64,000 nt of DNA from Octopus sinensis (lineage: Eukaryota): assembly GCF_006345805.1 (NCBI RefSeq), contig NC_043003.1, positions 85,002,001-85,066,000 on the forward strand, in the 5' to 3' direction. Positions 11,436-63,859 of the stretch are shown one piece after another (the stretch's first letter is position 1; every line of letters begins with the position of its first letter). Under the pieces are notes generated by a model. That model was not told where the DNA came from, did not search any database, and worked only from the letters and a program-made list of their open reading frames with translations. A program made the translations under genes and the position numbers.

Positions 11436-11500
11436 TATACATATGCATATATATATATGCATATATATACATATGCATATATATATATATGCAATTATAT

Positions 11501-11561: not shown

Positions 11562-11566
<5 letters not shown>

Positions 11567-15650: not shown

Positions 15651-15658
15651 CATTGTAG

Positions 15659-20660: not shown

Positions 20661-22844
20661 ATGACTGTGGCTTCTACCACAAAATAGAACTTAACTATTA
20701 TGAAGTGTAAATCAGGACAAAGCAAAGTTTGAAGGGTAAAAATTACAGCAACAAAAAGAAAGAATACACTCGTGAAGTGAAATAAAATGTTTATTTTAAT
20801 AATTATTACAACAATCATTAATTTTTAGTTCATTTAGAAATTTAGAATTATTTGACATTTTATAATTTAGTCAAATAAAATTTTCCGATCGTTGAAAAAA
20901 ATATATCAAAATCAAAAGAATTGAATATACTTAATAATTTGTAGGTATTGCATTTTTATTAATAGCTTCATTTGAAGAAGTGTAGTGGGAAGCCGTGACA
21001 TTCATTCAAAGGATAGTGACGCGAGGAAAATGAAATAACCACAGCAGATGATTCAAACTAAATCACAGAAACGTATTTGGTTTTTACTGTGAAGAAATAA
21101 AATAAATGAGGGAAACTCTACGGGACTGCTAGAAATAGCAGACCAAATCAAACTCAGACCACTTTGTAATGTCTTTAGAAAAAAGGAAGGCTACATTGAA
21201 CAACATTCTTTACTTCCTTTGTTTGTTTTTGTCAGCATTACCAAGGAGATGCCAAAGAACCGCTATCATGATTCACCGGTATTCAAAAAGTTGAGTGGTA
21301 ATCTTTGGAACACATTTGACCATATGTTTTTTCCCAGCTTATCCCAGAATAGTGTGAGGGAAGTAAAATAGATTCAACCGGTTCCGTTCAGTCAAAACCT
21401 ATTTACAACTGATTTACTACAAGGTTACACATTGAGAGGGAAAGAGTAGAGTTCGAACTTTTAATACGTATTAAGTGTGGATGGATGATTGTTAAACTTG
21501 ATGCGCGTGCGTGTGTGAGAACAATACTTATCCATTATTAGTAGAAAAAGAAGGGCAATGGATTGACAGAATCGTCAATGCGTCGAACAAATCCTTTGCA
21601 GGATTGTTCCGATTTTTTATGTCTGTAACCAAGGCAACTTGTCTTTTCATTCCTCTAAAGTAGATAAAATAAAGAATATGTCATGTACTGACGTAATCGA
21701 CTAACCTCCTTCTCTCGAAATTGCTGGCCTTGTACCTAAATTTGAAATTAATTTAGTAGATAGGAAAAACGCACCCTTGTGTTTGTAAGTGTGTCTAGTG
21801 ATCAATATTAAGTTGTTGTTTCACTCCAGTTTAGAAATGACTGAGCAGACATATGATGAAAGACGTTCCAATCTTGACCACTTAGTATAGGACCTCATTA
21901 TATAATGGGTTTTGTAAGACAGTGGAACATGAAAAAACTTGGTTGCTATTTCCAGCAAATCAAGTGACCACATAGAGTTCCCCTTTCGCCGCTGGCTCCA
22001 AAATTTGTAGTAAAAGAACATGTTTGAGAGTAGGTCACAGTAAACACCGAACTGGATGTTTTATTCTATATAGTTCGGTATCTCATTTCTTTTAGTTCAA
22101 AACTCTGCTGCAATAAATTTCATTTATCCTTCAGTGAGTCTGTAAAAAAAACTATCAGTAATACACTGGAGTTACTTTTACTGACTCCCTCGTCACTTCA
22201 ATTCATGTCTAGCCAAATAAAATCAATATTAGAAGTAGCATATATTATTTTTGAAAATCATAACTGATAGAAAATTAAGGATAAAATTTAAACAAAGTTT
22301 TCTTAATGTTCTTGGTATTCTGTAAGTGTTCTTCAATTAAAAACCAAAATCGCCGAGGTCAACAAAGCCAGAAGACTTGTCAAAGGAATTTGCACATCTA
22401 AAATGAAATAAAATAAAATTTGATACAATAATTAAATAAAATAGAAGCTATATTCATTCGCTTTACATGTAATTCAGTCAAAGCATAAAAAGGATCCGAC
22501 GATAATTTATAAGATAGAGTGAGGTTTAATGAGTAAGCATTGTATTATTCAGAAACAGTGCTTCATTTATTCATTTCAAACAACTCAGAGCAAGAAATGA
22601 GGAATATCTGGGATGTTGACTGGACAAAAGACTACTCCCAAATTACACTTTCCTTATTACAAAGCCAGAGACCTTGCTCTTGCCTGTTTCTAGAGTACTT
22701 GGCTTTGTAGGTGAGTCTTTGCGGTGTTGTGCAAGTTGTTATTGAATTTAATTTCAACACAGAAATTGCTGACATCCATTGTGCTTAAAGTCTAGGAACA
22801 AGATTAATTGTCGATGATGATCATACGACTTTACATCCACCCTG

Positions 22845-23502
22845 TATGTATGTATGCATGTATGTATGTATGTATGTATGTATGTATGTATGTATGTATG
22901 TATGTATGTATGGCTGGCTTGCTGGCTGACTGGATGGATGGATGGATGAATGGATGGTTTGCATACATTCAATCGAAACGGGCTGGTAAATATATGAAGC
23001 ATGTGAACTCTCTTTCTGAGAAGGGTACGAAACAAATATTTTCGCGTGACCAGCGCGGTCGTGTCAGCTTCTCAAATCAGCCTACTTAATCACAAGTGGG
23101 ATTATGAAGGTGGACCGTCTACAAATCCATTATGTTCTCTTGTGCACCGTCTTTAGTAGAATATGTGGGTCAGCCAATGGACTCTATTGGCATTGTAGAT
23201 CCCAACACCCATTGGTCGGGCTATTGCTAAATGGCTGACTTGTGATCGGTGAGGAATGACTTGTAGGTCTCTTGCAGGCCTTAGGAGTCATACGATACGT
23301 CATTAGCGATGGAGAGACAAAACTTAAGATATTTCTTAGACTCAAATGGGTTTAGAAAGCAGTTTTATCATGTCACGAGTCGACTTCCATAATGTATGAA
23401 TGTATGTATGTATGTAAGTATGTATGCATGCATGTATGTATATATGTATGTATGTATGTACGTATGTATGTATGTATGTATGTATGTATGTATGTATGTA
23501 TG

Positions 23503-23533
<31 letters not shown>

Positions 23534-23686
23534 TGTAGTAGGTAGGTAGGTAGGTAGGTAGGTAGGTAGGTAGGTAGGTCGGTCGGTAGGTAGGTAGGTA
23601 GGTAGGTAGGTAGGTAGGTAAGTAGGTAGGTAGGTAGGTAGGTAGGTAGGTAGGTAGGTAGGTAGGTAGGTAGGTAGGTAGGTAGA
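22845..23686. repeat. (TATG)n/(TGGA)n tract at 22845-22960 and (TATG)n(TAGG)n tract at 23393-23686
   Basis: Direct inspection. Confidence 0.9.
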
Positions 23687-23978
23687 ATGAATGATATATA
23701 GGTATGCATTATGTGTATAAATAAGCAAAAGAGTTTACTCTACGTAGTTCCTAATCATAATTTTCTCGACTCTCTGTTACCTGGTTTAGGATAAACAGCA
23801 TCAATCAACATGTTGAAAAATCCTTATAATTTCAACTGCGGGATATTATAGACTGTTTCAGTATCTAGAACTTTCAAGATAGACAAATCTTTGTTGAAAT
23901 AAGTTGCAGTTGTATCAACAATATTCCAAGCTATGGTATAAATTGGTACCTGAGCCATCAGATGAACCATAATAAGTA

Positions 23979-25804: not shown

Positions 25805-25893
<89 letters not shown>

Positions 25894-25967
25894 AAGAAGA
25901 AGAAGAAGAAGAAGAAGAAGAAGAAGAAGAAGAAGAAGAAGAAGAAGAAGAAGAAGAAGAAGAAGAA
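25805..25967. repeat. Compound (TAA)n(GAA)n microsatellite
   Basis: Direct inspection. Confidence 0.97.
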
Positions 25968-25969
25968 GG

Positions 25970-27785: not shown

Positions 27786-27821
27786 ATTTTGGGTTTTCAA
27801 AGCTTGCAGCAGCACTAGTCC
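27786..27821 (-). CDS. Micro-exon (36 nt) of mucin-like micro-exon gene: (G)TSAAASFENPK
   Basis: catgtatctgcattttccag|ggactagtgctgctgcaagctttgaaaacccaaaat|gtaagt; phase 1/1; acceptor context resembles the array micro-exons. Confidence 0.65.
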
Positions 27822-30190: not shown

Positions 30191-30220
30191 CTTTTTCAGT
30201 TGTAGTAGGATTGGTTGGGC
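30191..30220 (-). CDS. Micro-exon (30 nt): (G)PTNPTTTEK
   Basis: tatgtattttatatatttctag|gcccaaccaatcctactacaactgaaaaag|gtaacg; phase 1/1; same position in its diverged unit as the core exons. Confidence 0.72.
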
Positions 30221-32193: not shown

Positions 32194-32223
32194 CTGTTAC
32201 ACTTGCTGAAGGATTGATTGTAG
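32194..32223 (-). pseudogene. Micro-exon (30 nt, (A)TINPSASVT) with mutated acceptor (TAC instead of TAG); in-frame cryptic acceptor would give a 12-nt exon at 32194-32205
   Basis: tatgtattttatatatttgtac|ctacaatcaatccttcag^caagtgtaacag|gtaagg. The donor is intact; the canonical AG is lost; a ccttcag lies 18 nt downstream. Confidence 0.55.
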
Positions 32224-35200
32224 GTACAAATATATAAAATACATATTATTATACAAAGAATATCTGATGACAATATCATTTTCCATAATAGATATTATGG
32301 ATACACAACATATCTGTTTTATGTTTCCTCTAATAATAACTTCAATGGCATGCACACCGAATATATTATTAGCATTTAATATACAATAAATATTGCTATT
32401 TTTGTTAATTATATATTTCGGATTATATGAAAGACACGACATCCAGTTTTAGCGTGAATTTATCAAAGTTATTTACCTTACTACAAGGTAGATCGGTATA
32501 AGGATATACCAGTACCACTAACTGACGGTTTACGCTATGCAGGATACTCATTGCATGACTTTATCAGATATATATCGGGATTCATTGCCATCTTCTTTGC
32601 TATTCATCATACAAAAGATGTCTTAATAAACGAAGATTATAGCACTGAGATGTAAAGCATGCTATTGGGATGCACAGTTTTGATGTTGTCACAGAAGGTT
32701 ATGATTTGTTCAACTATTTCATATTCTCCAAACTGATGTATAACTAACTATATCCTTTAAATTATAAAGCAATATAGTAAAACTAGGTTTTCTAAATGTA
32801 ATTTTAAAAACACGTAAGTTTCAATACTATTTTTAAATTCGTAACAATATCTAAACTTACATGCGTGTAATTTTCTAACTGCTTAAAATTCATGCGTTGA
32901 AACATTACAATTTTCATTATAATCTCCTCTCTTGAAAAATATTTTATTGGTGATTACGGTAAGAGTTTTGATTCAATATCGTTCATAAACGGGATTAGAT
33001 TACATTACAATTTTCATTATAATCTCCTCTCTTGAAAAATATTTTATTGGTGATTACGGTAAGAGTTTTGATTCAATATATCGTTCATAAACGGGATCAG
33101 ATTTCTTCAAAGACTTTCCGGAACATTCTATATTTTACGCTATTCATATGAACGTAAATACTTTATCATCAAAATTTCAATCAATCGTTCACCTGAAACT
33201 TTTTCTTTCTTACACAATTTCATTTCAAGTTTTGATAAATTATCATAAATCTATTTTCATTATTGGCTTTCTATTCCATTCATTATAATAACCACTTCCG
33301 AAACTGAGACATCATATCCAGGTCAGTAATAAATATTTCTTAGAGACAATGTCGAAATACATAATCTTCTGTTCCACTTAGATTTTCCAAAGTTAAAACA
33401 CTGATTTACAATAACTTATACTACAGTGTTTAACCAAAGCAAAGAGTAACAGTCTTTAAAGTATGTTACAAATATGTATCAATATATAGCGAACTACAAC
33501 AATACATTTTATAATATTTACAAAATATCAGAACATAAATATTTTCGTATTTTAATAATAGTTCGTAATGGACACATGAAGTGTTTCAAATATGAGCAGA
33601 GGTCGAGCTATTTTGTCGGAGACAAATTAAATCGATTACATTACATATGTTTTTATCAGATATTTCTAGATATTCATTTCCATTTTCTGTGCTATTTATC
33701 ATACAAAAGTTATTAATAATCCAACATTAGAGCACCCAGATATAAAGAATGGTTTGATTCATAGCGATCATGTTGTCACTGAATGATACATTATTTCAAC
33801 TGTTTCATATTCCTCCAAGCCAAGCATAACTATATCTATTTCTTTTACATTATGAAACTATATACTAAAACTATGTTTGCTAACTGTAATTTATAAACAC
33901 TTAAGTTTCAATACTCTTTCAAAATGTGCGACGATATCTACAATCTACACGTATATGCGTGCAACTTTCTAATTACTTAAAATTCATAATTTCTAACATT
34001 GTGATATTCATTAATATCACATCTCTTGAAAATGATATCATTGAGGATTATGGTAAGAGCTCTTGTCAAAATACATCTTTCAAAAACTCGATCAGATTAC
34101 ATCACTCACAATGTTCCTGGAAATTTTTATATACAGAATTACAATGTAATGCTTTTATCAGATATTTCTAGATATTCATTTCCATATTGTCTGCTATTTA
34201 TCATACAAAAGTTATTAATAATCCAACATTAGAGCACCCAGAGATAAAGAATGGTCTGATTCATAGCGTGCACGTTGTCACTGATTGATACAATACTTCA
34301 ACTGTTTCATTTTCGTTCAAGCGAAGTATAACTATAACTATTTCTTTTACATTATGAAACTATATACTAAATCTATGTTTGCTAACTGTTATTTATAAAC
34401 ACTTAAATTTTAATACAATTTCAAAATGTGCGAAGATATGCACATCTACACGCATGTGCGTGCAACTTTCTAATTACTTAATATTCATACTTTCTAACAT
34501 TGTAATTTTCATTAATTTCACATCACCTAAAAATGATATCATTGATGATTACGGTAAGAGCTATCTATAAAATATATCTTTCACAAACTCGATCAGATTT
34601 CATCAATCAAAATGTTTCTGGAAATTTCTATATTTCATGTCATTCATATAACCCTAAATACTGCATCATTTTCTGAATCCTTTTTACATCCTACACATTT
34701 CAGTTCCTGCTCGGATTAATTGACTAAACTCTATTATTATTTCTGTCATTATCTTCCGTTTATTATGCTAACCACATTCGAAACTACGACATCATTTCCA
34801 TGTCAGCAGCAAATATTTAATAGAGGTAATATTTGTAATGCATGTCATCTTTTGTTCCATAATGTTTTACCAAAGTTCAAGCATTCTTACACAATAATTT
34901 ATACTTCAGTGTTTGACCAATGCAACAGGTAAAGTAAATTACAGATATGTATCAATATACAGCAACATACATCAATACTTATTGTTTCACTTAATTTTAT
35001 GATAGTTACAACGTTTCAAATCATAAGTATATTCGTATCTTTATAATAGTTCGTAACGAAAATATGAAATGCTTCAAATATGGGCAGAGGTCGTGCAATT
35101 TTGTGGGAGATCAATTCAATCTTTTACGTTAGGCCAAATTGTTGAGCATGACCATAGTATTCTGCCTGGCACAAGAGCTAATTCATTGATAAACTTGCCG

Positions 35201-35369: not shown

Positions 35370-35390
35370 CTGTAGTGTTGGTGCCAGGGA
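35370..35390 (-). CDS. Micro-exon (21 nt): (V)PGTNTT
   Basis: tatgtattttaaatatttccag|tccctggcaccaacactacag|gtaagt; phase 1/1; NTT sequon. Confidence 0.8.
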
Positions 35391-37125
35391 CTGGAAATAT
35401 TTAAAATACATATTATTATACAAACAAATCTAATTGCAAATTCATATTCCGTAATAAATATTTGGGATATACTATATATCTCTTTATGATTACTCTAATA
35501 ATTTCTGCAATCGCTTGCTATAGTTTATTTACAAACAACTTTACATAATATAATTGACATGGACGACTATGTATTAAGATGAAAAGATTAGTGCTTTCCA
35601 ATGAAAATCGTTTAATGCATTAGCACTACCAAAAGCAATTGAAATGCAATGAAATAACTATGATAAGTCTATTTACCTCACCTTAAATATCGAAGAAAGG
35701 AACACGGCATATAATATACGCATTTCATATCAAATACATATTATTCGTTTTGTTAATTACATATTTCGAATAATGAGAAAAACACGACTTCCACATTTTG
35801 CAGATTGTTATCTCAGTTATTTACTTCAAGACCATGGTGGATCGACATTGCAATATACAGTAACAGTACCATGCAGTTTAATTTATACAGAATTACAATG
35901 TAATGCTTTTATCAGATATTTCTAGATATTCATTTCCATATTGTCTGCTATTTATCATAAAAAAGTTATTAATAATCCAACATTAGAGCACCCAGAGATA
36001 AAGAATGGTCTGATTCATAGCGTGCACGTTGTCACTGATTGATACAATACTTCAACTGTTTCATTTTCGTTCAAGCGAAGTATAACTATAACTATTTCTT
36101 TTACATTATGAAACTATATACTAAATCTATGTTTGCTAACTGTAATTTATAAACACTTAAATTTTAATACAATTTCAAAATGTGCGAAGATATGCACAAT
36201 CTACACGCATGTGCGTGCAACTTTCTAATTACTTAATATTCATACTTTCTAACATTGTAATTTTCATTAATTTCACATCACCTAAAAATGATATCATTGA
36301 TGATTACGGTAAGAGCTATCTATAAAATATATCTTTCACAAACTCGATCAGATTTCATCACTCAAAATGTTTCTGGAAATTTCTATATTTCATGTCATTC
36401 ATATAACCCTAAATACTGCATCATTTTCTGAATCCTTTTTACATCCTACACATTTTCAGTTCCTGCTCGGATTAATTGACTAAACTCTATTATTATTTCT
36501 GTCATTATCTTCCGTTTATTATGCTAACCACATTCGAAACTACGACATCATTTCCATGTCAGCAGCAAATATTTAATAGAGGTAATATTTGTAATGCATG
36601 TCATCTTTTGTTCCATAATGTTTTACCAAAGTTCAAGCATTCTTACACAATAATTTATACTTCAGTGTTTGACCAATGCAACAGGTAAAGTAAATTACAG
36701 ATATGTATCAATATACAGCAACATACATCAATACTTATTGTTTCACTTAATTTTATGATAGTTACAACGTTTCAAATCATAAGTATATTCGTATCTTTAT
36801 AATAGTTCGTAACGAAAATATGAAATGCTTCAAATATGGGCAGAGGTCGTGCAATTTTGTGGGAGATCAATTCAATCTTTTACGTTAGGCCAAATTGTTG
36901 AGCATGACCATAGTGTTCTGCCTGGCACAAGAGCTAATTCATTGATAAACTTGCCGGCATTTCAACGCATACCGAAAAGAGACAGATGATGCTCCACTCA
37001 GCTTTTTGGTGACACGTTAAATATTCTGTCAGTTGCTTACCTCAAGAATCTATCAATAAGGCGATGAATAATTTAATTGTAAAATTCATTGAAAATTAAT
37101 TTATTTATATATGAGAATCACTTAC

Positions 37126-37146
37126 CTGTAGTGTTGGTGCCAGGGA
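37126..37146 (-). CDS. Micro-exon (21 nt): (V)PGTNTT
   Basis: Identical to the 35370 exon; atttccag|...|gtaagt. Confidence 0.8.
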
Positions 37147-38521
37147 CTGGAAATATTTAAAATACATATTATTATACAAACAAATCTAATTGCAAATTCA
37201 TATTCCGTAATAAATATTTGGAATATACTATATATCTCTTTATGATTACTCTAATAATTTCTGCAATCGCTTGCTATAGTTTATTTACAAACAACTTTAC
37301 ATAATATAATTGACATGGACGACTATGTATTAAGATGAAAAGATATGTGCGTTTAATGCATTATCACTACCAACACCAATTGAAATGCACTGACATAACT
37401 ATGTTCTGATTCATAGCGTGCACGTTGTCACTGATTGATACAATACTTCAACTGTTTCATTTTCGTTCAAGCGAAGTATAACTATAACTATTTCTTTTAC
37501 ATTATGAAACTATATACTAAATCTATGTTTGCTAACTGTAATTTATAAACACTTAAATTTTAATACAATTTCAAAATGTGCGAAGATATGCACAATCTAC
37601 ACGCATGTGCGTGCAACTTTCTAATTACTTAATATTCATACTTTCTAACATTGTAATTTTCATTAATTTCACATCACCTAAAAATGATATCATTGATGAT
37701 TACGGTAAGAGCTATCTATAAAATATATCTTTCACAAACTCGATCAGATTTCATCACTCAAAATGTTTCTGGAAATTTCTATATTTCATGTCATTCATAT
37801 AACCCTAAATACTGCATCATTTTCTGAATCCTTTTTACATCCTACACATTTTCAGTTCCTGCTCGGATTAATTGACTAAACTCTATTATTATTTCTGTCA
37901 TTATCTTCCGTTTATTATGCTAACCACATTCGAAACTACGACATCATTTCCATGTCAGCAGCAAATATTTAATAGAGGTAATATTTGTAATGCATGTCAT
38001 CTTTTGTTCCATAATGTTTTACCAAAGTTCAAACATTCTTACACAATAATTTATACTTCAGTGTTTGACCAATGCAACAGGTAAAGTAAATTACAGATAT
38101 GTATCAATATACAGCAACATACATCAATACTTATTGTTTCACATAATTTTATGATATTTACAACGTTTCAAAACATAAATATATTCGTATCTTTATAATA
38201 GTTCGTAACGAAAATATGAAATGCTTCAAATATGGGCAGAGCTCGTGCAATTTTGTGGGAGATCAATTCAATCTTTTACGTTAGGCCAAATTGTTGAGCG
38301 TGACTATATTTTTCCGCCTGGCACGTGAGCTAATGCATTGATAAACTTGCCGGCATTTCAACGCATACCGAAAAGAGACAGATGATGCTCCACTCAGCTT
38401 TTTGGTGACACGTTAAATATTCTGTCAGTTGCTTACCTCAAGAATCTATCAATAAAGCGATGAATATTTTAATTGTAAAATTCATTGAAAATTAACTTAT
38501 TTATATATGAGAATCACTTAC

Positions 38522-38542
38522 CTGTAGTCTTTGCGGTAGTGG
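38522..38542 (-). CDS. Micro-exon (21 nt): (A)TTAKTT
   Basis: tatgtattttaaatattttcag|ccactaccgcaaagactacag|gtaagt; phase 1/1. Confidence 0.8.
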
Positions 38543-40277
38543 CTGAAAATATTTAAAATACATATTATTATACAAACGAATCTAATTGCAAATTCATATT
38601 CCGTAATAAATATTTGGAATATACTATATATCTTTTTATGATTACTCTTATAATTTCTGCAATCTCTTGCTATCGTTTATTTACAAACTAATTTACATAA
38701 TATAATTGACATGGAGGACTATATATTAAGATGAAAAGATATGTGCTTTCCAATAAAAATCGTTTAATGCATTAGCACTACCAAAAGCAATTGAAATGCA
38801 CTGACATAACTATGATAAGTCTATTTACCTCACCGTAAACATCGAGGAAAGGAACACGGCATATAATATACGCATTTCATATCAAATACATATTATTCGT
38901 TTTGTTAATTACATATTTCGAATAATGAGAAAAACACGACTTCCACATTTTGCAGATTGTTATCTCAGTTATTTACTTCAAGACCATGGTGGATCGACAT
39001 TGCAATATACAGTAACAGTACCATGCAGTTTAATTTATACAGAATTACAATGTAATGCTTTTATCAGATATTTCTAGATATTCATTTCCATATTGTCTGC
39101 TATTTATCATGAAAAAGTTATTAATAATCCAACATTAGAGCACCCAGAGATAAAGAATGTTCTGATTCATAGCGTGCACGTTGTCACTGATTGATACAAT
39201 ACTTCAACTGTTTCATTTTCGTTCAAGCGAAGTATAACTATAACTATTTCTTTTACATTATGAAACTATATACTAAATCTATGTTTGCTAACTGTAATTT
39301 ATAAACACTTAAATTTTAATACAATTTCAAAATGTGCGAAGATATGCACAATCTACACGCATGTGCGTGCAACTTTCTAATTACTTAATATTCATACTTT
39401 CTAACATTGTAATTTTCATTAATTTCACATCACCTAAAAATGATATCATTGATGATTACGGTAAGAGCTATCTATAAAATATATCTTTCACAAACTCGAT
39501 CAGATTTCATCACTCAAAATGTTTCTGGAAATTTCTATATTTCATGTCATTCATATAACCCTAAATACTGCATCATTTTCTGAATCCTTTTTACATCCTA
39601 CACATTTTCAGTTCCTGCTCGGATTAATTGACTAAACTCTATTATTATTTCTGTCATTATCTTCCGTTTATTATGCTAACCACATTCGAAACTACGACAT
39701 CATTTCCATGTCAGCAGCAAATATTTAATAGAGGTAATATTTGTAATGCATGTCATCTTTTGTTCCATAATGTTTTACCAAAGTTCAAACATTCTTACAC
39801 AATAATTTATACTTCAGTGTTTGACCAATGCAACAGGTAAAGTAAATTACAGATATGTATCAATATACAGCAACATACATCAATACTTATTGTTTCACAT
39901 AATTTTATGATATTTACAACGTTTCAAAACATAAATATATTCGTATCTTTATAATAGTTCGTAACGAAAATATGAAATGCTTCAAATATGGGCAGAGCTC
40001 GTGCAATTTTGTGGGAGATCAATTCAATCTTTTACGTTAGGCCAAATTGTTGAGCGTGACTATATTTTTCCGCCTGGCACGTGAGCTAATGCATTGATAA
40101 ACTTGCCGGCATTTCAACGCATACCGAAAAGAGACAGATGATGCTCCACTCAGCTTTTTGGTGACACGTTAAATATTCTGTCAGTTGCTTACCTCAAGAA
40201 TCTATCAATAAAGCGATGAATATTTTAATTGTAAAATTCATTGAAAATTAACTTATTTATATATGAGAATCACTTAC

Positions 40278-40298
40278 CTGTAGTCTTTGCGGTAGTGG
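40278..40298 (-). CDS. Micro-exon (21 nt): (A)TTAKTT
   Basis: Identical to the 38522 exon; splice sites intact. Confidence 0.8.
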
Positions 40299-42033
40299 CT
40301 GAAAATATTTAAAATACATATTATTATACAAACGAATCTAATTGCAAATTCATATTCCGTAATAAATATTTGGAATATACTATATATCTTTTTATGATTA
40401 CTCTTATAATTTCTGCAATCTCTTGCTATCGTTTATTTACAAACTAATTTACATAATATAATTGACATGGAGGACTATATATTAAGATGAAAAGATATGT
40501 GCTTTCCAATGAAAATCGTTTAATGCATTATCACTACCAACACCAATTGAAATGCACTGACATAACTATGATAAGTCTATTTACCTCACCGTAAACATCG
40601 AGGAAAGGAACACGGCATATAATATACGCATTTCATATCAAATACATATTATTCGTTTTGTTAATTACATATTTCGAATAATGAGAAAAACACGACTTCC
40701 ACATTTTGCAGATTGTTATCTCAGTTATTTACTTCAAGACCATGGTGGATCGACATTGCAATATACAGTAACAGTACCATGCAGTTTAATTTATACAGAA
40801 TTACAATGTAATGCTTTTATCAGATATTTCTAGATATTCATTTCCATATTGTCTGCTATTTATCATAAAAAAGTTATTAATAATCCAACATTAGAGCACC
40901 CAGAGATAAAGAATGTTCTGATTCATAGCGTGCACGTTGTCACTGATTGATACAATACTTCAACTGTTTCATTTTCGTTCAAGCGAAGTATAACTATAAC
41001 TATTTCTTTTACATTATGAAACTATATACTAAATCTATGTTTGCTAACTGTAATTTATAAACACTTAAATTTTAATACAATTTCAAAATGTGCGAAGATA
41101 TGCACAATCTACACGCATGTGCGTGCAACTTTCTAATTACTTAATATTCATACTTTCTAACATTGTAATTTTCATTAATTTCACATCACCTAAAAATGAT
41201 ATCATTGATGATTACGGTAAGAGCTATCTATAAAATATATCTTTCACAAACTCGATCAGATTTCATCACTCAAAATGTTTCTGGAAATTTCTATATTTCA
41301 TGTCATTCATATAACCCTAAATACTGCATCATTTTCTGAATCCTTTTTACATCCTACACATTTTCAGTTCCTGCTCGGATTAATTGACTAAACTCTATTA
41401 TTATTTCTGTCATTATCTTCCGTTTATTATGCTAACCACATTCGAAACTACGACATCATTTCCATGTCAGCAGCAAATATTTAATAGAGGTAATATTTGT
41501 AATGCATGTCATCTTTTGTTCCATAATGTTTTACCAAAGTTCAAACATTCTTACACAATAATTTATACTTCAGTGTTTGACCAATGCAACAGGTAAAGTA
41601 AATTACAGATATGTATCAATATACAGCAACATACATCAATACTTATTGTTTCACATAATTTTATGATATTTACAACGTTTCAAAACATAAATATATTCGT
41701 ATCTTTATAATAGTTCGTAACGAAAATATGAAATGCTTCAAATATGGGCAGAGCTCGTGCAATTTTGTGGGAGATCAATTCAATCTTTTACGTTAGGCCA
41801 AATTGTTGAGCGTGACTATATTTTTCCGCCTGGCACGTGAGCTAATGCATTGATAAACTTGCCGGCATTTCAACGCATACCGAAAAGAGACAGATGATGC
41901 TCCACTCAGCTTTTTGGTGACACGTTAAATATTCTGTCAGTTGCTTACCTCAAGAATCTATCAATAAAGCGATGAATATTTTAATTGTAAAATTCATTGA
42001 AAATTAACTTATTTATATATGAGAATCACTTAC

Positions 42034-42054
42034 CTGTAGTCTTTGCGGTAGTGG
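42034..42054 (-). CDS. Micro-exon (21 nt): (A)TTAKTT
   Basis: Identical to the 38522 exon; splice sites intact. Confidence 0.8.
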
Positions 42055-43789
42055 CTGAAAATATTTAAAATACATATTATTATACAAACGAATCTAATTG
42101 CAAATTCATATTCCGTAATAAATATTTGGAATATACTATATATCTTTTTATGATTACTCTTATAATTTCTGCAATCTCTTGCTATCGTTTATTTACAAAC
42201 TAATTTACATAATATAATTGACATGGAGGACTATATATTAAGATGAAAAGATATGTGCTTTCCAATGAAAATCGTTTAATGCATTATCACTACCAACACC
42301 AATTGAAATGCACTGACATAACTATGATAAGTCTATTTACCTCACCGTAAACATCGAGGAAAGGAACACGGCATATAATATACGCATTTCATATCAAATA
42401 CATATTATTCGTTTTGTTAATTACATATTTCGAATAATGAGAAAAACACGACTTCCACATTTTGCAGATTGTTATCTCAGTTATTTACTTCAAGACCATG
42501 GTGGATCGACATTGCAATATACAGTAACAGTACCATGCAGTTTAATTTATACAGAATTACAATGTAATGCTTTTATCAGATATTTCTAGATATTCATTTC
42601 CATATTGTCTGCTATTTATCATACAAAAGTTATTAATAATCCAACATTAGAGCACCCAGAGATAAAGAATGTTCTGATTCATAGCGTGCACGTTGTCACT
42701 GATTGATACAATACTTCAACTGTTTCATTTTCGTTCAAGCGAAGTATAACTATAACTATTTCTTTTACATTATGAAACTATATACTAAATCTATGTTTGC
42801 TAACTGTAATTTATAAACACTTAAATTTTAATACAATTTCAAAATGTGCGAAGATATGCACAATCTACACGCATGTGCGTGCAACTTTCTAATTACTTAA
42901 TATTCATACTTTCTAACATTGTAATTTTCATTAATTTCACATCACCTAAAAATGATATCATTGATGATTACGGTAAGAGCTATCTATAAAATATATCTTT
43001 CACAAACTCGATCAGATTTCATCACTCAAAATGTTTCTGGAAATTTCTATATTTCATGTCATTCATATAACCCTAAATACTGCATCATTTTCTGAATCCT
43101 TTTTACATCCTACACATTTTCAGTTCCTGCTCGGATTAATTGACTAAACTCTATTATTATTTCTGTCATTATCTTCCGTTTATTATGCTAACCACATTCG
43201 AAACTACGACATCATTTCCATGTCAGCAGCAAATATTTAATAGAGGTAATATTTGTAATGCATGTCATCTTTTGTTCCATAATGTTTTACCAAAGTTCAA
43301 ACATTCTTACACAATAATTTATACTTCAGTGTTTGACCAATGCAACAGGTAAAGTAAATTACAGATATGTATCAATATACAGCAACATACATCAATACTT
43401 ATTGTTTCACATAATTTTATGATATTTACAACGTTTCAAAACATAAATATATTCGTATCTTTATAATAGTTCGTAACGAAAATATGAAATGCTTCAAATA
43501 TGGGCAGAGCTCGTGCAATTTTGTGGGAGATCAATTCAATCTTTTACGTTAGGCCAAATTGTTGAGCGTGACTATATTTTTCCGCCTGGCACGTGAGCTA
43601 ATGCATTGATAAACTTGCCGGCATTTCAACGCATACCGAAAAGAGACAGATGATGCTCCACTCAGCTTTTTGGTGACACGTTAAATATTCTGTCAGTTGC
43701 TTACCTCAAGAATCTATCAATAAAGCGATGAATATTTTAATTGTAAAATTCATTGAAAATTAACTTATTTATATATGAGAATCACTTAC

Positions 43790-43810
43790 CTGTAGTCTTT
43801 GCGGTAGTGG
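43790..43810 (-). CDS. Micro-exon (21 nt): (A)TTAKTT
   Basis: Identical to the 38522 exon; splice sites intact. Confidence 0.8.
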
Positions 43811-45539
43811 CTGAAAATATTTAAAATACATATTATTATACAAACGAATCTAATTGCAAATTCATATTCCGTAATAAATATTTGGAATATACTATATATC
43901 TTTTTATGATTACTCTTATAATTTCTGCAATCTCTTGCTATCGTTTATTTACAAACTAATTTACATAATATAATTGACATGGAGGACTATATATTAAGAT
44001 GAAAAGATATGTGCTTTCCAATGAAAATCGTTTAATGCATTATCACTACCAACACCAATTGAAATGCACTGACATAACTATGATAAGTCTATTTACCTCA
44101 CCGTAAACATCGAGGAAAGGAACACGGCATATAATATACGCATTTCATATCAAATACATATTATTCGTTTTGTTAATTACATATTTCGAATAATGAGAAA
44201 AACACGACTTCCACATTTTGCAGATTGTTATCTCAGTTATTTACTTCAAGACCATGGTGGATCGACATTGCAATATACAGTAACAGTACCATGCAGTTTA
44301 ATTTATACAGAATTACAATGTAATGCTTTTATCAGATATTTCTAGATATTCATTTCCATATTGTCTGCTATTTATCATAAAAAAGTTATTAATAATCCAA
44401 CATTAGAGCACCCAGAGATAAAGAATGTTCTGATTCATAGCGTGCACGTTGTCACTGATTGATACAATACTTCAACTGTTTCATTTTCGTTCAAGCGAAG
44501 TATAACTATAACTATTTCTTTTACATTATGAAACTATATACTAAATCTATGTTTGCTAACTGTAATTTATAAACACTTAAATTTTAATACAATTTCAAAA
44601 TGTGCGAAGATATGCACAATCTACACGCATGTGCGTGCAACTTTCTAATTACTTAATATTCATACTTTCTAACATTGTAATTTTCATTAATTTCACATCA
44701 CCTAAAAATGATATCATTGATGATTACGGTAAGAGCTATCTATAAAATATATCTTTCACAAACTCGATCAGATTTCATCACTCAAAATGTTTCTGGAAAT
44801 TTCTATATTTCATGTCATTCATATAACCCTAAATACTGCATCATTTTCTGAATCCTTTTTACATCCTACACATTTTCAGTTCCTGCTCGGATTAATTGAC
44901 TAAACTCTATTATTATTTCTGTCATTATCTTCCGTTTATTATGCTAACCACATTCGAAACTACGACATCATTTCCATGTCAGCAGCAAATATTTAATAGA
45001 GGTAATATTTGTAATGCATGTCATCTTTTGTTCCATAATGTTTTACCAAAGTTCAAACATTCTTACACAATAATTTATACTTCAGTGTTTGACCAATGCA
45101 ACAGGTAAAGTAAATTACAGATATGTATCAATATACAGCAACATACATCAATACTTATTGTTTCACATAATTTTATGATATTTACAACGTTTCAAAACAT
45201 AAATATATTCGTATCTTTATAATAGTTCGTAACGAAAATATGAAATGCTTCAAATATGGGCAGAGCTCGTGCAATTTTGTGGGAGATCAATTCAATCTTT
45301 TACGTTAGGCCAAATTGTTGAGCGTGACTATATTTTTCCGCCTGGCACGTGAGCTAATGCATTGATAAACTTGCCGGCATTTCAACGCATACCGAAAAGA
45401 GACAGATGATGCTCCACTCAGCTTTTTGGTGACACGTTAAATATTCTGTCAGTTGCTTACCTCAAGAATCTATCAATAAAGCGATGAATATTTTAATTGT
45501 AAAATTCATTGAAAATTAACTTATATGAGAATCACTTAC

Positions 45540-45560
45540 CTGTAGTGTTGGTGACAGGGA
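45540..45560 (-). CDS. Micro-exon (21 nt): (V)PVTNTT
   Basis: atttccag|tccctgtcaccaacactacag|gtaagt; one nonsynonymous change from VPGTNTT. Confidence 0.8.
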
Positions 45561-47295
45561 CTGGAAATATTTAAAATACATATTATTATACAAACAAATC
45601 TAATTGCAAATTCATATTCCGTAATAAATATTTGGAATATACTATATATCTTTTTATGATTACTCTTATAATTTCTGCAATCTCTTGCTATCGTTTATTT
45701 ACAAACTAATTTACATAATATAATTGACATGGAGGACTATATATTAAGATGAAAAGATATGTGCTTTCCAATGAAAATCGTTTAATGCATTATCACTACC
45801 AACACCAATTGAAATGCACTGACATAACTATGATAAGTCTATTTACCTCACCGTAAACATCGAGGAAAGGAACACGGCATATAATATAAGCATTTCATAT
45901 CAAATACATATTATTCGTTTTGTTAATTACATATTTCGAATAATGAGAAAAAGACGACTTCCACATTTTGCAGATTGTTATCTCAGTTATTTACGTCAAG
46001 ACCATGGTGGATCGACATTGCAATATACAGTAACAGTAACATGCAGTTTAATTTATACAGAATTACAATGTAATGCTTTTATCAGATATTTCTAGATATT
46101 CATTTCCATATTGTCTGCTATTTATCATACAAAAGTTATTAATAATCCAACATTAGAGCACCCAGAGATAAAGAATGGTCTGATTCATAGCGTGCACGTT
46201 GTCACTGATTGATACAATACTTCAACTGTTTCATTTTCGTTCAAGCGAAGTATAACTATAACTATTTCTTTTACATTATGAAACTATATACTAAATCTAT
46301 GTTTGCTAACTGTTATTTATAAACACTTAAATTTTAATACAATTTCAAAATGTGCGAAGATATGCACAATCTACACGTATGTGCGTGCAGCTTTCTAATT
46401 ACTTAATATTCATACTTTCTAACATTGTAATTTTCATTAATTTCACATCACCTAAAAATGATATCATTGATGATTACGGTAAGAGCTATCTATAAAATAT
46501 ATCTTTCACAAACTCGATCAGATTTCATCACTCAAAATGTTTCTGGAAATTTCTATATTTCATGTCATTCATATAACCGTAAATACTGCATCATTTTCTG
46601 AATCCTTTTTACATCCTACACATTTTCAGTTCCTGCTCGGATTAATTGGCTAAACTCTATTATTATTTCTGTCATTATCTTCGCTTTATTATGCTAACCA
46701 CATTCGAAACTACGACATCATTTCCATGTCAGCAGCAAATATTTAATAGAGGTAATATTTGTAATGCATGTCATCTTTTGTTCCATAATGTTTTACCAAA
46801 GTTCAAACATTCTTACACAATAATTTATACTTCAGTGTTTGACCAATGCTACAGGTAAAGTAAATAACAGATATGTATCAATATACAGCAACATACATCA
46901 ATACTTATTGTTTCACGTAATTTTATAATATTTACAACGTTTCAAAACATAAATATTTTCGTATCTTTATAATAGTTCGTAACGAAAATATGAAATGCTT
47001 CAAATATGGGCAGAGGTCATGCAATTTTGTGGGAGATCAATTCAATCTTTTACGTTAGGCCAAATTGTTGAGCATGACCATAGTATTCTGCCTGGCACAG
47101 GAGCTAATACATTGATAAACTTGCCGGCATTTCAACGCATACCGAAAAGAGACAGATGATGCTCAACTCAGCATTTTGGCCACACGTTAAATATTCTGTC
47201 AGTTGCTTACCTCAAGAATCTATCAATAAAGCGATGAATATTTTAATTGTAAAATTCATTGAAAATTAACTTATTTATATATGAGAATCACTTAC

Positions 47296-47316
47296 CTGTA
47301 GTCTTTGCGGTAGTGG
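47296..47316 (-). CDS. Micro-exon (21 nt): (A)TTAKTT
   Basis: attttcag|ccactaccgcaaagactacag|gtaagt. Confidence 0.8.
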
Positions 47317-49038
47317 CTGAAAATATTTAAAATACATATTATTATACAAACGAATCTAATTGCAAATTCATATTCCGTAATAAATATTTGGAATATACTA
47401 TATATCTTTTTATGATTACTCTTATAATTTCTGCAATCTCTTGCTATCGTTTATTTACAAACTAATTTACATAATATAATTGACATGGAGGACTATATAT
47501 TAAGATGAAAAGATATGTGCTTTCCAATAAAAATCGTTTAATGCATTAGCACTACCAAAAGCAATTGAAATGCACTGACATAACTATGATAAGTCTATTT
47601 ACCTCACCTTAAATATCGAGGAAAGGAACACGGCATATAATATACGCATTTCATATCAAATATATATTATTCGTTTTGTTAATTACATATTTCGAATAAT
47701 GAGAAAAACACGACTTCCACATTTTGCAGATTGTTATCTCAGTTATTTGGTGGATCGACATTGCAATATACAGTAACAGTACCATGCAGTTTAATTTATA
47801 CAGAATTACAATGTAATGCTTTTATCAGATATTTCTAGATATTCATTTCCATATTGTCTGCTATTTATCATACAAAAGTTATTAATAATCCAACATTAGA
47901 GCACCCAGAGATAAAGAATGGTCCGATTCATAGCGTGCACGTTGTCACTGATTGATACAATACTTCAACTGTTTCATTTTCGTTCAAGCGAAGTATAACT
48001 AAAACTATTTCTTTTACATTATGAAACTATATACTAAATCTATGTTTGCTAACTGTAATTTATAAACACTTAAACTTCAATACAATTTGAAAATGTACGA
48101 CGATATGCACAATCTACACGCATGTGCGTGCAACTTTCTAATTACTTAATATTCATACTTTCTAACATTGTAATTTTCATTAATTTCACATCACCTAAAA
48201 ATGATATCATTGATGATTACGGTAAGAGCTATCTATAAAATATATCTTTCACAAACTCGATCAGATTTCATCACTCAAAATGTTTCTGGAAATTTCTATA
48301 TTTCATGTCATTCATATAACCCTAAATACTGCATCATTTTCTGAATCCTTTTTACATCCTACACATTTTCAGTTCCTGCTCGGATTAATTGACTAAACTC
48401 TATTATTATTTCTGTCATTATCTTCGCTTTATTATGCTAACCACATTCGAAACTACGACATCATTTCCATGTCAGCAGCAAATATTTAATAGAGGTAATA
48501 TTTGTAATGCATGTCATCTTTTGTTCCATAATGTTTTACCAAAGTTCAAACATTCTTACACAATAATTTATACTTCAGTGTTTGACCAATGCAACAGGTA
48601 AAGTAAATTACAGATATGTATCAATATACAGCAACATACATCAATACTTATTGTTTCACATAATTTTATGATATTTACAACGTTTCAAAACATAAATATA
48701 TTCGTATCTTTATAATAGTTCGTAACGAAAATATGAAATGCTTCAAATATGGGCAGAGCTCGTGCAATTTTGTGGGAGATCAATTCAATCTTTTACGTTA
48801 GGCCAAATTGTTGAGCGTGACTATATTTTTCCGCCTGGCACGTGAGCTAATGCATTGATAAACTTGCCGGCATTTCAACGCATACCGAAAAGAGACAGAT
48901 GATGCTCCACTCAGCTTTTTGGTGACACGTTAAATATTCTGTCAGTTGCTTACCTCAAGAATCTATCAATAAAGCGATGAATATTTTAATTGTAAAATTC
49001 ATTGAAAATTAACTTATTTATATATGAGAATCACTTAC

Positions 49039-49059
49039 CTGTAGTGTTGGTGCCAGGGA
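49039..49059 (-). CDS. Micro-exon (21 nt): (V)PGTNTT
   Basis: atttccag|tccctggcaccaacactacag|gtaagt. Confidence 0.8.
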
Positions 49060-50792: not shown

Positions 50793-50822
50793 CTCTTGCT
50801 CTTCCAGAAGTTGGGCCAGTGT
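50793..50822 (-). CDS. Micro-exon (30 nt): (D)TGPTSGRAR
   Basis: ggtattttaaatatttccag|acactggcccaacttctggaagagcaagag|gtaaat; phase 1/1. Confidence 0.72.
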
Positions 50823-52007: not shown

Positions 52008-52036
52008 CTTTTGCAGAGGTTTTATTAGCAGCAATT
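52008..52036 (-). pseudogene. Dead micro-exon (29 nt, donor GT>AT); remnant of x-IAANKTSAK
   Basis: tatgtattttatatatttctag|aattgctgctaataaaacctctgcaaaag|ataaat. The position is homologous to the other exons, but the donor is lost and the length is not a multiple of 3. Confidence 0.6.
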
Positions 52037-53842: not shown

Positions 53843-53872
53843 CGTTTGGACCTCCATTAGCACTGGTTACGC
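53843..53872 (-). CDS. Micro-exon (30 nt): (C)VTSANGGPN, completes the signal peptide
   Basis: tatattttatatatttctag|gcgtaaccagtgctaatggaggtccaaacg|gtaaat; phase 1/1. Joined to exon 1 it gives ...AIVSCVTS/A, with a plausible signal-peptidase site. Confidence 0.72.
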
Positions 53873-55099: not shown

Positions 55100-58000
55100 T
55101 AATGTTTTAAGGAACACACCTTGCTACTGCGTTTCTGTACAAAGTTTTTTCCATGGATTCATTCCCTTCCTAACACCATCGGGTATACTAATTCATTTTA
55201 TCACAATTTTTCTTGGCACCAGTGTAATAGTTTGCCTCGTCTTAGTCATGCCTCAAAAGTCCTCGCATCCCTGCATGGTCTTTGCTCGAACTTTGAACAT
55301 TTCGCAGCTGATACAGATTACACTTTTTACCTGTCACAAGCGCTTTGGAGTTTGTCTCACCTTCTGCAACACGATTCTGGCGTGTGTACTGGGTGCTTTC
55401 TCCCGTTGTGTGTGTTTGCTGAAATTGCTGAGCGGAGTGACAATCATGTCATGAAAAACTGCAAAAACTATGGAAAGAAGCCACAAAGCGGGAAGAAGAA
55501 AAATCCATAAAAATGTGGGAAAAACAACAAGAGTGAGTCACTAACTATGAAGAAAACCATGGAGACAAATGCATAATGAAAACGAAACCACAACAACACG
55601 AAGAAATCGAAAACAAACTTAGACACTAACCCCAGAAGAACCGAACTGAGGTAACGAACCTCTAATTACCCAAGAACATACGCGGAAATGACCCCTGTCT
55701 CACCCCAAGTACAGACCAGAAACCTATATTCTTCAATGCATAACACTGCAAATAACCAACACATGAAATATAGAAGACGACAATCAACCCATAAATCAAC
55801 ACACCATAGATGGATAAATAAAAAGAAAAAGGGCATGATAGGCAAATATCATACAGACAACCACCAACCGAAAATAACATGTACCCTAGATGGATGAATA
55901 CATAGGAAGAGAGACAAATAAAATACAGACAGCACGGGTACTATAATAGGAATAATAATCATCATGATAACTCAAGCAACCCACGATTTACGACCAAAAA
56001 TCCCATATATCCTGAATGGCGAAAAGAGCATGGAGGAAGGGAAGAAAACAAAACTTATAACCAGCGGAATTCATATAAAAGATATGAACCATCCTCCCAC
56101 TTACATGGAAACCAGAACGCCGAGATCAGAAAACGGAGACATAGTGACAAAATTCCATTTTTAGGGAGGAAATACTAAAATAACACACCGGACCCGATAA
56201 TACACAAAATTTAAATGAACACACACACAACATATAGACCCGAAGATCATAAATTTGTCAAACGAGAATGAGATGATCCTCCTATTAAAATGTTTCAAGT
56301 TTACCCCGACACCTACACCTAATCTCATAGAACTGGAATCTGATACTGAACACTTCAACCGCCACCTCCGACTTATAGAATTCTTGAACAACAAAGATTT
56401 AAATGATGAATAATAGTCAGAAATAAATCCCACTTCATCCGCTACAAGGGAAAGGACAAATAGTTAGACGTATATATAGGCACGATTTAAAAATTTCCCC
56501 TAAATACCCACAGATGCAAACAAAACCTTCGTGAAGAGGAAAAGGAAGCCTTACAAACACTGAAGAATGACATCTCAGTCATCCTAAAAGAAAAAAACAG
56601 TAATGAATAAAATCAGGAGACTAATCAATGAATTCCAAGATTCCTTCACGGACAAGGAGGAAGATTATATATGCAGCTCTGTAATCAAAGAGAGTAATTT
56701 CTACGGATTACCCAAAATCCACAAAAGCTCCGAAATACAAAGTGCCATAAATAAGAAGTACCAATACGTAAAAATACTAAGGCCTTCTGACCTCAAACTA
56801 AGACCAATAGTTGCTGGAAATCAAGCACCAACACAACAACTAAGTCATTCTTTGGATATACTCCTAAAACCTTTGTAGCTTTTAATACCCAATTATGTAC
56901 ATGATGGCATAGATTTCATCCAACACATCCCTTCCACTGTCGCAGAAGATACTATACTCACAAGTTTTGATGGCACCAATTTCTATATTAATATACCTCA
57001 CACTTTAGGCCTAGAAGCAATCAAATACCGGGTAGAGGAACACAGAGAACGGATAAATGAACGTTTCAACACTGACTTCATCACCAAGGCCACACACCTA
57101 GTACTAGAGGAAAATACCTTTAGATTCGACAATAAAACATATGGACAAAAAAGGGCACGGCCATGGGTACGCTGTTTACGATCTCATATGCAAACTTAGT
57201 AATGGGATACTTGGAAGTAAAACTTTATGAGGAAGTAGAAAAAACTTTTGATCAGGAGTACAAGAAATATATTAAAAAGTGGAAACGCTTCCTTGATGAT
57301 TGCTTCATCTTCTGGGACAAATCGAATGAAGATCTAAATATATTTAACAATATACTGAACACACTTGACCCATTCATCTAATTCACGACAGAATCCATTT
57401 GCAATGAACTACCATTCCAGGATATCCATATAAAAATACAGAACTCCACAGTCACAACAAACATATTTTATAAAACACCGACACCAACCAATATTTAAAT
57501 TTCTACTCTTGCCATAGACGCATCTGTGCTATAATGACTGACCCCAAAATACGTGAAATCCGACTCAACGAAATCAAAGGCTTCCCCACAACACAGAAAT
57601 ACCCCTTAGGATTAATTAATGAGGGGATTAAAAAAGCGATGGAACTGAATATCACATCTACGGATACCTAAGGAAAAAGTTAATGAAAACACGATTCCGT
57701 TCATTAACACACACAGTCCTGGAATGACCATCTTCCACAAACTTACCTGTACTCCTACAAAGACCCAAAATGAAAAATCTGATTGAAAAAAAACACCTTA
57801 CGGAATAGCAGATGCCAACCAAAAAATCTTAAAAAACACCTCACAAGGGCAGAATTCAAATCAGAGAATGAATCTGAATTCTTAGTAAAAGAATGTGGAG
57901 TTAGAAGATGTAGAACACGCAACATCAACAACTTCAAATACTTGGAAAGGGGTTCTTACATAAAATTCAAAAGCGGATCCCTTTTCAAGATGCAGATATG

Positions 58001-58449: not shown

Positions 58450-58720
58450 GAATACAAAAATGGGGCATCCAGACAGTTAGATGATACAAAAAGAGACAAG
58501 AAAAAACAAGGAGTCATTCCTCAGTCGAGTTCCAGATTATTTTTGCAGTTTCGTCGAGTATAACCAGCCGAAACTGAAAAGATAATCTGGAACTCGACTG
58601 ACGAAAGAAAACTCCGAATGAACCGTTTTTGTTTTTCTCTTGTCCCTTTTTGTATCATCTAACTGTCTGAATGTCTTGTTGTCTCCGGTTGCGTTCTTGT
58701 CCCATTTTTTTGTATTTTTT
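58448..58720. repeat. Imperfect fold-back inverted repeat downstream of the Penelope-like element
   Basis: …cagacagttagatgatacaaaaag…ttcctcagtcgagttccagattat…cagtttcg is mirrored by cgaaactg…ataatctggaactcgactga…ctttttgtatcatctaactgtctg; flanked by (TA)n. Confidence 0.8.
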
Positions 58721-63813: not shown

Positions 63814-63859
63814 ATGAAACTATGGCCATGACGACGATGAGAAGATATATAGTCTTCAT
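63814..63859 (-). CDS. First coding exon of the micro-exon gene: signal peptide MKTIYLLIVVMAIVS
   Basis: aaacatcATG aag act ata tat ctt ctc atc gtc gtc atg gcc ata gtt tca t|gtgagt. A basic n-region and hydrophobic h-region, a consensus donor, and phase 1 like all micro-exons. Confidence 0.7.

Follow-up and report, generated by a model that had tools for sequence, protein, structure and literature searches.

The 64,000-nucleotide (nt) stretch of Octopus sinensis DNA considered here (the window, within which all positions are counted) is 100% identical to part of chromosome CM016865.1 of assembly GCA_006345805.1, and all window data come from this one assembly. Its minus strand carries the repeat core of a gene for a small Thr-rich mucin-like surface protein, whose 7-residue repeats are encoded by 21-nt micro-exons. 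The array (54836-29517) consists of about 15 tandem intron/micro-exon units with a period of 1756 nt. Conceptual translation matched a single protein, O. sinensis XP_036360301.1, which has been named 'autotransporter adhesin BpaC-like' by NCBI. We show that the micro-exons of this gene and of a nearby paralogue are about ten times as diverse as the introns in which they are embedded. This exon-limited excess is real and general across both genes. The features of the window gene are, in their order along the minus strand:

63814..63859, minus strand: probable true exon 1, MKTIYLLIVVMAIVS plus one base, phase 1, donor gtgagt; orthologue of exon 1 of the paralogue
58664..58705, minus strand: first coding exon of the Gnomon model XP_036360301.1 (MGQERNRRQQDIQT), no signal peptide, doubtful 5' end
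56555..56583, minus strand: Gnomon 5' exon MTEMSFFSV, 3' end in phase 1
53843..53872, minus strand: micro-exon U1, 30 nt, VTSANGGPN
52008..52036, minus strand: pseudo-exon U2, 29 nt, donor AT; dead in both paralogues, which differ at 1/29 positions
50793..50822, minus strand: micro-exon U3, 30 nt, (D)TGPTSGRAR; canonical AG/GT and open frame, not in the Gnomon protein
49039..49059, minus strand: exon U4, V allele; V tract of at most 81 nt within an A-like intron
47296..47316, minus strand: exon U5, A allele; both flanks nearest to paralogue exon pE4 (2.2-2.5%)
45540..45560, minus strand: exon U6, V* (G>T at 45554; VPVTNTT); V tract of 50-137 nt
43790..43810, minus strand: exon U7, A allele
42034..42054, minus strand: exon U8, A allele
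41812..41847, minus strand: intronic island +207..+242, shown for unit U8 as an example
40278..40298, minus strand: exon U9, A allele
38522..38542, minus strand: exon U10, A allele
37126..37146, minus strand: exon U11, V allele; the unit upstream has a 343-nt deletion
35370..35390, minus strand: exon U12, V allele, in a block of about 700 nt that is 4-9% off the A units
32194..32223, minus strand: exon U13, 30 nt, (A)TINPSASVT; acceptor AC instead of AG, donor intact
30191..30220, minus strand: exon U14, 30 nt, (G)PTNPTTTEK; identical in the paralogue
27786..27821, minus strand: penultimate exon GTSAAASFENPK; two replacement differences from the paralogue
22333..22397, minus strand: last coding exon YVQIPLTSLLALLTSAILVFN plus stop, with a hydrophobic tail resembling a glycosylphosphatidylinositol (GPI) signal; identical in the paralogue

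The Gnomon protein XP_036360301.1 joins its exons in the order U1, V, A, V*, A, A, A, A, V, V, U13, U14, GTSAAASFENPK, YVQIPLTSLLALLTSAILVFN, which is the order of the array exons along the minus strand of the window. All 12 internal exons are 21-36 nt long and run from phase 1 to phase 1 behind a first exon that resembles a signal-peptide leader. Exon lengths are divisible by three and splice sites are nearly all AG/GT; since the micro-exons are symmetric, any one of them could be skipped with the frame kept. Among the 14 distinct exon sequences of both genes, the coding frame (phase 1) contains no stop in 99 codons, whereas the two remaining frames contain 3 and 5. Thr accounts for 35% of the exon-encoded residues, and Thr, Ser and Pro together for 55%. 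The product starts with MKTIYLLIVVMAIVSC and ends in ...SAAASFENPKYVQIPLTSLLALLTSAILVFN, a hydrophobic tail preceded by small residues. To judge from the appearance of these termini and repeats, it is probably secreted via a signal peptide, GPI-anchored and O-glycosylated, and the protein is of low complexity and presumably disordered.

The 5' end of the Gnomon model (58705...) is doubtful because no signal peptide is found there, and it is probably wrong or else reflects an alternative promoter. Taking 63859-63814 as exon 1 yields a clean open reading frame (ORF) of 131 amino acids with a putative signal peptide, mucin repeats and a hydrophobic GPI-like tail. This exon is not used by XP_036360301.1 and has 96-97% identity with exon 1 of the paralogue. 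Another signal-peptide candidate at 57778-57747 was dropped for want of an ATG; the scan then gave 63859-63814, which was confirmed by the paralogue.

The annotated name of the protein misleads. Its Pfam matches to PF01456 (Mucin-like glycoprotein, 25.1 bits against a gathering cut-off of 34.7) and PF07010 (Endomucin, 18.4 against 26.6 bits) both stay below threshold and reflect composition only, and no autotransporter family is among the Pfam matches. As Pfam returned only sub-threshold compositional matches and nothing autotransporter-like, we regard 'BpaC-like' as a low-complexity artefact, and an identity as bacterial trimeric autotransporter was rejected for this spliced eukaryotic gene of 131-152 codons. 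Protein searches, including a query with the non-repetitive termini, matched two O. sinensis genes and gave no homologue outside this species, and a literature search on octopus micro-exons found no paper. A host gene for intronic RNA, of the type known for tandem small nucleolar RNAs, was also considered and rejected: Rfam gave nothing at gathering scores in the whole window, and a search of one unit at E<=1 gave a single chance-level match.

Units that deviate from 1756 nt measure 1750, 1743 and 1396 nt, the last with the 343-nt deletion, which lies between U10A and U11V at 37401-37403. Identity between units is 96-100% in the centre of the array and 65-86% at its edges, and the introns of the nine core units are 96.8-100% identical. 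Each core unit holds a 21-nt exon preceded by ttYcag and followed by gtaagt. Two alleles alternate: V (TCCCTGGCACCAACACTACAG, VPGTNTT) at 49059-49039, 37146-37126 and 35390-35370, joined by V*, which carries one G>T change (base 45554), at 45560-45540; and A (CCACTACCGCAAAGACTACAG, ATTAKTT) at exons starting at 47316, 43810, 42054, 40298 and 38542. Along the gene the core order is V, A, V*, A, A, A, A, V, V, and neither 21-mer was matched in shuffled sequence (0 matches). The edges of the array are less regular. At the position that corresponds to the 21-nt exon, edge units have 30-nt exons (U1, U3, U13 and U14), and U2 is a decayed copy of 29 nt. Scrambled and duplicated partial units fill 32354-34132 between U12V and U13, including a 100-bp tandem duplication in two copies at 32902-33103. 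Decay of U13 is reciprocal between the two genes: the window copy has acceptor AC and an intact donor, the paralogue copy (L002, the paralogue locus, about 33292-33321) acceptor AG and donor CT. Despite its AC acceptor, U13 (ATINPSASVT) is still included in the Gnomon protein of the window gene. The paralogue copy of U3 (L002, about 22870-22900) has several indels limited to the exon and donor region, with loss of the GT.

The paralogue, LOC115213828 ('integumentary mucin C.1-like' or 'mucin-2-like', isoforms X1-X4), is located on the same chromosome at a distance of 155 kb. Its unique flanks align colinearly to the window and are 97.5-97.9% identical to it, so that the two genes are identified, on sequence comparison, as products of a recent segmental duplication, for which the neutral background is about 2.3%. 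LOC115213828 has the same period of 1756 nt and six other 21-nt exon alleles (pE1-pE6) that form a graded series of 1, 2 and 3 steps. None of the window-gene alleles occurs in it; the minimum distances are 3 for A-pE4 and 5 for V-pE3, V-pE5 and V-pE6. Its four annotated isoforms differ by skipping pE1, pE3 or pE4, an indirect sign that the micro-exons are real and combinatorially used. For the window gene, no isoforms are on record.

To compare exons with introns, each V or V* exon was aligned with each A exon including 880 nt per side, giving 20 pairs with 1400-1747 aligned intron bases. V and A differ at 7/21 positions (offsets 0, 2, 5, 6, 8, 10 and 13), six of these differences being replacements and one synonymous, as stated in the preliminary description of this locus that had been drawn from its letters and reading frames. 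Introns of the same pairs differ by 0.52-3.21%, again in agreement with that description, which had put them at about 1.7 kb and a few percent apart. The binomial P for the exon ranges from 1e-11 to 3e-6, and the next most diverged 21-nt window averages 2.65 differences. Intron base -4 perfectly tracks the allele (C with V, T with A). Including the paralogue, the comparison covers 15 units (nine core units and six paralogue units) with nine exon alleles. Over this set, pairwise diversity (pi) is 0.228 in the exon and 0.023 in the intron, 12/21 exon columns are variable versus 140/1760 intron columns (Fisher P=1.5e-8), and the exon is the most diverse among 1719 windows of 21 nt. The peak is sharp, since bins within 60 nt of the exon have a pi of only 0.024-0.047. 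A broad haplotype block, with the divergence extending equally over 100 bp or more of intron, is not what the sliding-window alignment displays: even in U11V and U12V, where a block from -300 to +420 (about 700 nt) is 4-9% off the A units and the remainder of the unit 0.2-0.5%, the exon within the block reaches 33% (P=1e-4).

Copies of one allele are identical over the whole exon (0/21), even where the introns around them are up to 2.9% apart. The only within-class change among the nine units, the Gly-to-Val variant of U6 that had already been noticed at exon 45540, fits the intron density of 75 segregating sites in 1747, so there is no sign of ongoing exon hypervariability. The reversal of the usual exon-intron pattern therefore stands as a difference in diversity, but the wording that exons diverge much faster than introns is overstated, because intron similarity reflects young or homogenised units and within-class exon change is intron-like. 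Between the paralogues, array introns are 1.2-2.6% apart, compared with 2.1-2.5% for the unique flanks. The outer 30-nt exons are also more diverged than their near flanks. In a flank-anchored ungapped comparison they mismatch at 33-57% of positions (mean 47%), whereas the flanks of the old edge units mismatch at 14-25% within 80 nt and at 35-50% further out; to call these exons unalignable was somewhat too strong. The near-exon intron is the best-kept part of the old units, presumably owing to splicing signals. One non-coding segment approaches exon diversity: the island +207..+242 downstream of the core exons has a pi of 0.13, and 8-9 linked differences in its 36 nt separate two haplogroups with 22-25% mismatch. 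Old patches can therefore survive in the intron without coding selection.

The alternation of V and A is a matter of two discrete alleles that were shuffled by unit amplification and by short conversion tracts of at most about 80-350 nt. The V state is limited to at most 81 nt in U4V and to 50-137 nt in U6V, and the surrounding intron is A-like with essentially no flank divergence. U5A matches the states of U12V at -298..-233 and +143..+300, but those of the A units between -200 and +134. Among the nine units, at least five recombination events (Rm) are required. Downstream introns fall into two haplogroups that are common to both genes, alpha (pE1-3, U4V, U6V, U7-10A) and beta (U5A, pE4, U11V, U12V, pE5-6), and V and A are each found on both. 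The four A units U7-U10 are 0-0.3% apart and carry the A exon on the other downstream haplogroup than U5A. The flanks of U5A are nearest to pE4 at background level (2.2-2.5%), and a T at -4 is shared only by U5A and pE4 in this comparison; from the flanks we infer that A is the counterpart of pE4. Localised conversion, one of two causes suggested previously, does account for the toggling, but the divergent outside donor that had been invoked is neither needed nor found in the window. A search of the 64 kb on both strands for a donor or inverted template of the 18-nt variable cores, with up to 4 mismatches, returned only the exons themselves. Exon-only conversion mediated by complementary DNA was ruled out, as intron position -4, and in some units -36, moves with the allele.

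Diversifying selection on an exposed product was the other suggested cause, and here the evidence is divided. The product is Thr-rich and surface-like in sequence, and change on the allele network is biased towards replacements: 17 replacement and 3 synonymous changes (85% replacement) correspond to a dN/dS ratio (omega) of about 2.3, and the per-site rate of replacement change is roughly 13-fold that of the intron. Among the most similar allele pairs (pE1/pE2, pE2/pE3, pE5/pE6 and V/V*) there are 5 replacements and no synonymous change, with introns 0-3% apart. In the comparison of the paralogues, 8/115 sites of the live mucin-domain exons have changed, each by a replacement, versus the background of 2.3% (P=0.005), while the signal-peptide and tail exons differ at 2/112 sites and the dead exon U2p at 1/29, that is, at background rate. 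A replacement-biased form of selection acting on the mature peptide is plausible, though its support is weak, and positive selection at the exons is not proven.

The explanation that we consider somewhat better than an even bet combines an older allele pool, shaped by replacement-biased or unconstrained evolution of the mucin stalk, with homogenised introns and near flanks that are constrained by splicing. Each Thr/Pro-rich repeat of 7-10 residues stems from one symmetric micro-exon of 21 or 30 nt in a unit of about 1756 nt. According to this explanation, the array would grow and shrink by unequal crossing-over, leaving the youngest units in the centre and the oldest at the edges, and units would in addition swap short gene-conversion tracts. 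V and A belong to a pool that comprises at least nine discrete alleles of the exon and is shared with the paralogue in kind but not in sequence. The pool probably predates the segmental duplication, the alternative being that orthologous exons have recently accelerated. Following the duplication, tracts that include the exon, tens to a few hundred bases long, would have been copied between units of the window gene, and a recombinant A unit would then have been amplified to give U7-U10. The exon would be the only part of the unit in which variants are favoured, or at least tolerated, at the protein level, resulting in replacement-biased change within a compositionally constrained mucin stalk. 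Introns would stay alike through recent duplication and homogenisation, and the 80 nt beside the exon would be held by splicing signals.

Several observations weigh against this explanation. At about 2.3, omega does not significantly exceed 1 (P=0.13). The mucin-domain excess falls to P=0.07 without the A/pE4 pair, the orthology of which was deduced from the flanks. Synonymous sites, too, have changed more than the intron (3 changes on about 6 sites, P~0.015), and this joint rise argues against protein-level selection alone, which does not predict it. U14 is unchanged between the paralogues (0/30). In the window gene, conversion has cut exon diversity to two alleles, so that diversity is not obviously protected there. 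Proteins matching the gene come from O. sinensis only and from no other species, and the island +207..+242 is a second, non-exonic site of linked differences. Finally, short-read polishing of a long-read assembly could understate the differences among repeat introns.

Ongoing diversifying selection on the exposed peptide, for instance in a host-microbe or recognition context, would make fast replacements after each unit duplication the main cause of the excess. The thirteenfold rate of replacements per network site fits this proposal, as do the 5 replacements without a synonymous change in the closest allele pairs with introns 0-3% apart, the 3 replacements between A and pE4 against the 2.3% background, and a product that appears from its sequence to be a surface or secreted mucin. 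Still, we consider it rather unlikely as the main cause. It shares the difficulties of the omega test (P=0.13), the raised synonymous sites, the unchanged U14 (0/30) and the reduction of the window gene to two alleles, and it is further at odds with the single, intron-like change within V and A among nine units. A broader proposal, which we regard as doubtful, sees the micro-exon mucin pair as a lineage-restricted system that generates diversity in a cell-surface glycoprotein. Selection or a targeted process would diversify the exons alone and make the pool of heptad alleles; short-tract conversion and unit amplification would reshuffle them within and between both genes; and combinatorial skipping of micro-exons would multiply the products. 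Individuals would then differ in repertoire, possibly in the setting of microbe interaction or self-recognition.

Exon alleles could also be the oldest unhomogenised patches of a neutral mosaic, in which dense mismatches block heteroduplex extension without any selection. The non-coding island with its 22-25% mismatch between old haplogroups demonstrates that such patches exist, and the raised synonymous sites, the 700-nt block at 4-9% around the U11 and U12 exons and the weak constraint on mucin sequence point in the same direction. But the deepest island falls exactly on the exon, for which one random island has a chance of about 2%, and the old edge units are likewise most diverged at the exon. 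Exon-containing tracts do transfer, so the exon is no strict conversion barrier, and 85% of the changes are replacements. Taken together, this makes a purely neutral origin distinctly improbable.

Very little probability remains for an exon-targeted mutational process such as error-prone synthesis, template switching or conversion from a donor at another genomic site. Eight linked changes within 18 nt (-4..+13), the joint elevation of synonymous and replacement sites and the restriction of the U3 indels in the paralogue to exon and donor would agree with it, and hypermutation has been proposed for the mature-peptide exons of conotoxins (PMC3862624). On the other hand, the dead exon U2p evolves at background rate (1/29 between the paralogues), neither a donor nor an inverted template occurs in the 64 kb (<=4 mismatches in 18 nt), U3 as outgroup places the V/A differences on both lineages (by reading of the sequences), and the paralogue alleles are graded in 1, 2 and 3 steps and do not appear in single jumps. 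An artefact, in which assembly or polishing homogenised the introns or the 21-mers are not exons at all (for example, part of a non-coding host transcript), is hardly credible: four units at 99.7-100% identity are typical of a hard-to-assemble repeat and one Gnomon exon has a non-AG acceptor, but the independent paralogous locus has the same unit, period and exon-limited variation with intron divergence equal to that of the unique flanks, the frame is open in the coding phase only, no Rfam family is found in the window, and polishing cannot make discrete in-frame exon alleles.

Outside the array, a CUB-domain gene adjoins each of the two mucin genes and was co-duplicated with them (window, up to 12333-13572, plus strand; L002 49719-53133). 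A retrotransposon of the type without long terminal repeats (non-LTR) occupies 520-5430 on the plus strand, with ORFs that are broken by frameshifts and a GC content of 0.43-0.52 compared with about 0.30 in the remaining window:

524-1552, plus strand: retrotransposon ORF, function unassigned
1996-2709, plus strand: retrotransposon apurinic/apyrimidinic (AP) endonuclease ORF
3241-3780 and 3750-5432, plus strand: retrotransposon reverse-transcriptase ORFs with zf-RVT domain

Long microsatellites are found at 5795-6002, 10852-11565, 15519-15654, 17498-17905, 23392-23714 and 25805-25968; they include (TATC)52, a (TATA)-like tract of about 700 nt, (TTC)35, (ATGT)81 and (ATA)20(AAG)35, and there is a purine-rich GAG/GAA tract of about 400 nt.

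If the exon excess reflects selection, the octopus genes would represent an independent origin of a tandem micro-exon mucin design that is best documented so far in schistosomes, in which it is the basis of variation at the host-parasite interface. A cephalopod case would suggest that this design is a general route to evolve and vary short glycosylated surface repeats. Should the diversity-generator proposal hold, a free-living mollusc would have converged on a counterpart of two schistosome systems, the polymorphic mucins (SmPoMuc) and the micro-exon genes (MEGs). The locus is also a natural experiment in which paralogues 2.3% apart, 15 near-identical introns and nine alleles allow conversion, crossing-over and selection to be separated. 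It further calls for caution, as an exon that appears to evolve faster than its intron may, inside a repeat array, owe much of this contrast to introns that are young or homogenised.

The closest known parallel is SmPoMuc of Schistosoma mansoni, in which a 27-bp exon encodes one Thr/Ser/Pro-rich repeat and is repeated in tandem with its flanking intron as a unit of about 1 kb in up to ~20 copies, with intronic parts more than 93-94% identical (Roger et al. 2008, PMC2576457). Its exon types r1, r1', r2 and r3 can intermingle by recombination, and concerted evolution has been invoked (PMC2576457). The octopus genes share the short Thr/Ser/Pro exon of 3n nt, the kb-scale tandem unit, introns more than 93% identical and discrete, intermingled exon types. 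They differ in the unit of 1756 nt, the exon of 21 nt and the lack of microsatellite spacers, in a tiny protein with a GPI-like tail in place of the 13-exon constant region of SmPoMuc, and in their host, a free-living mollusc and not a parasite. SmPoMuc varies between individuals in repeat number and type, while the octopus array is known here from one assembly. Because protein searches matched O. sinensis only, the octopus genes are an analogue of SmPoMuc and not a family member. For the MEGs of Schistosoma, accelerated evolution has been reported (Philippsen et al. 2015, PMC4350168). The coding sequence of MEGs lies mostly in symmetric exons of about 6-36 nt, flanked by a signal-peptide exon and a terminal one, and the octopus gene has the same plan with internal exons of 21-36 nt. 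Skipping of micro-exons, a source of protein variants in MEGs, is suggested for the octopus by the annotated paralogue isoforms X1-X4. Unlike those of the octopus array, MEG exons are generally not found within near-identical tandem introns, and the protein searches gave no homology to them.

Spider silk genes such as Flag and Argiope MaSp2 are also composed of exon/intron modules in repeated series, and the introns of one gene are 94-99.7% identical (PMC9779670). There, however, exons are homogenised along with the introns, whereas in the octopus genes the exons are the variable part (pi 0.228 vs 0.023). Conotoxin genes combine conserved introns with one exon class in which both the replacement (Dn) and the synonymous (Ds) rate are raised (PMC3862624). 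The octopus genes resemble them as molluscan genes for a putatively secreted product with conserved introns and a joint replacement and synonymous rise. Conotoxins are nevertheless cysteine-framework peptides of dispersed families, with statistically established positive selection and no intragenic micro-exon arrays. In the major histocompatibility complex (MHC) and in primate opsin genes, gene conversion keeps introns alike while certain exons stay divergent. Those cases concern duplicated whole genes with long exons and balancing selection of known function. In conclusion, the octopus genes, which by sequence stand outside all of these families, represent a convergent instance of a known architecture.

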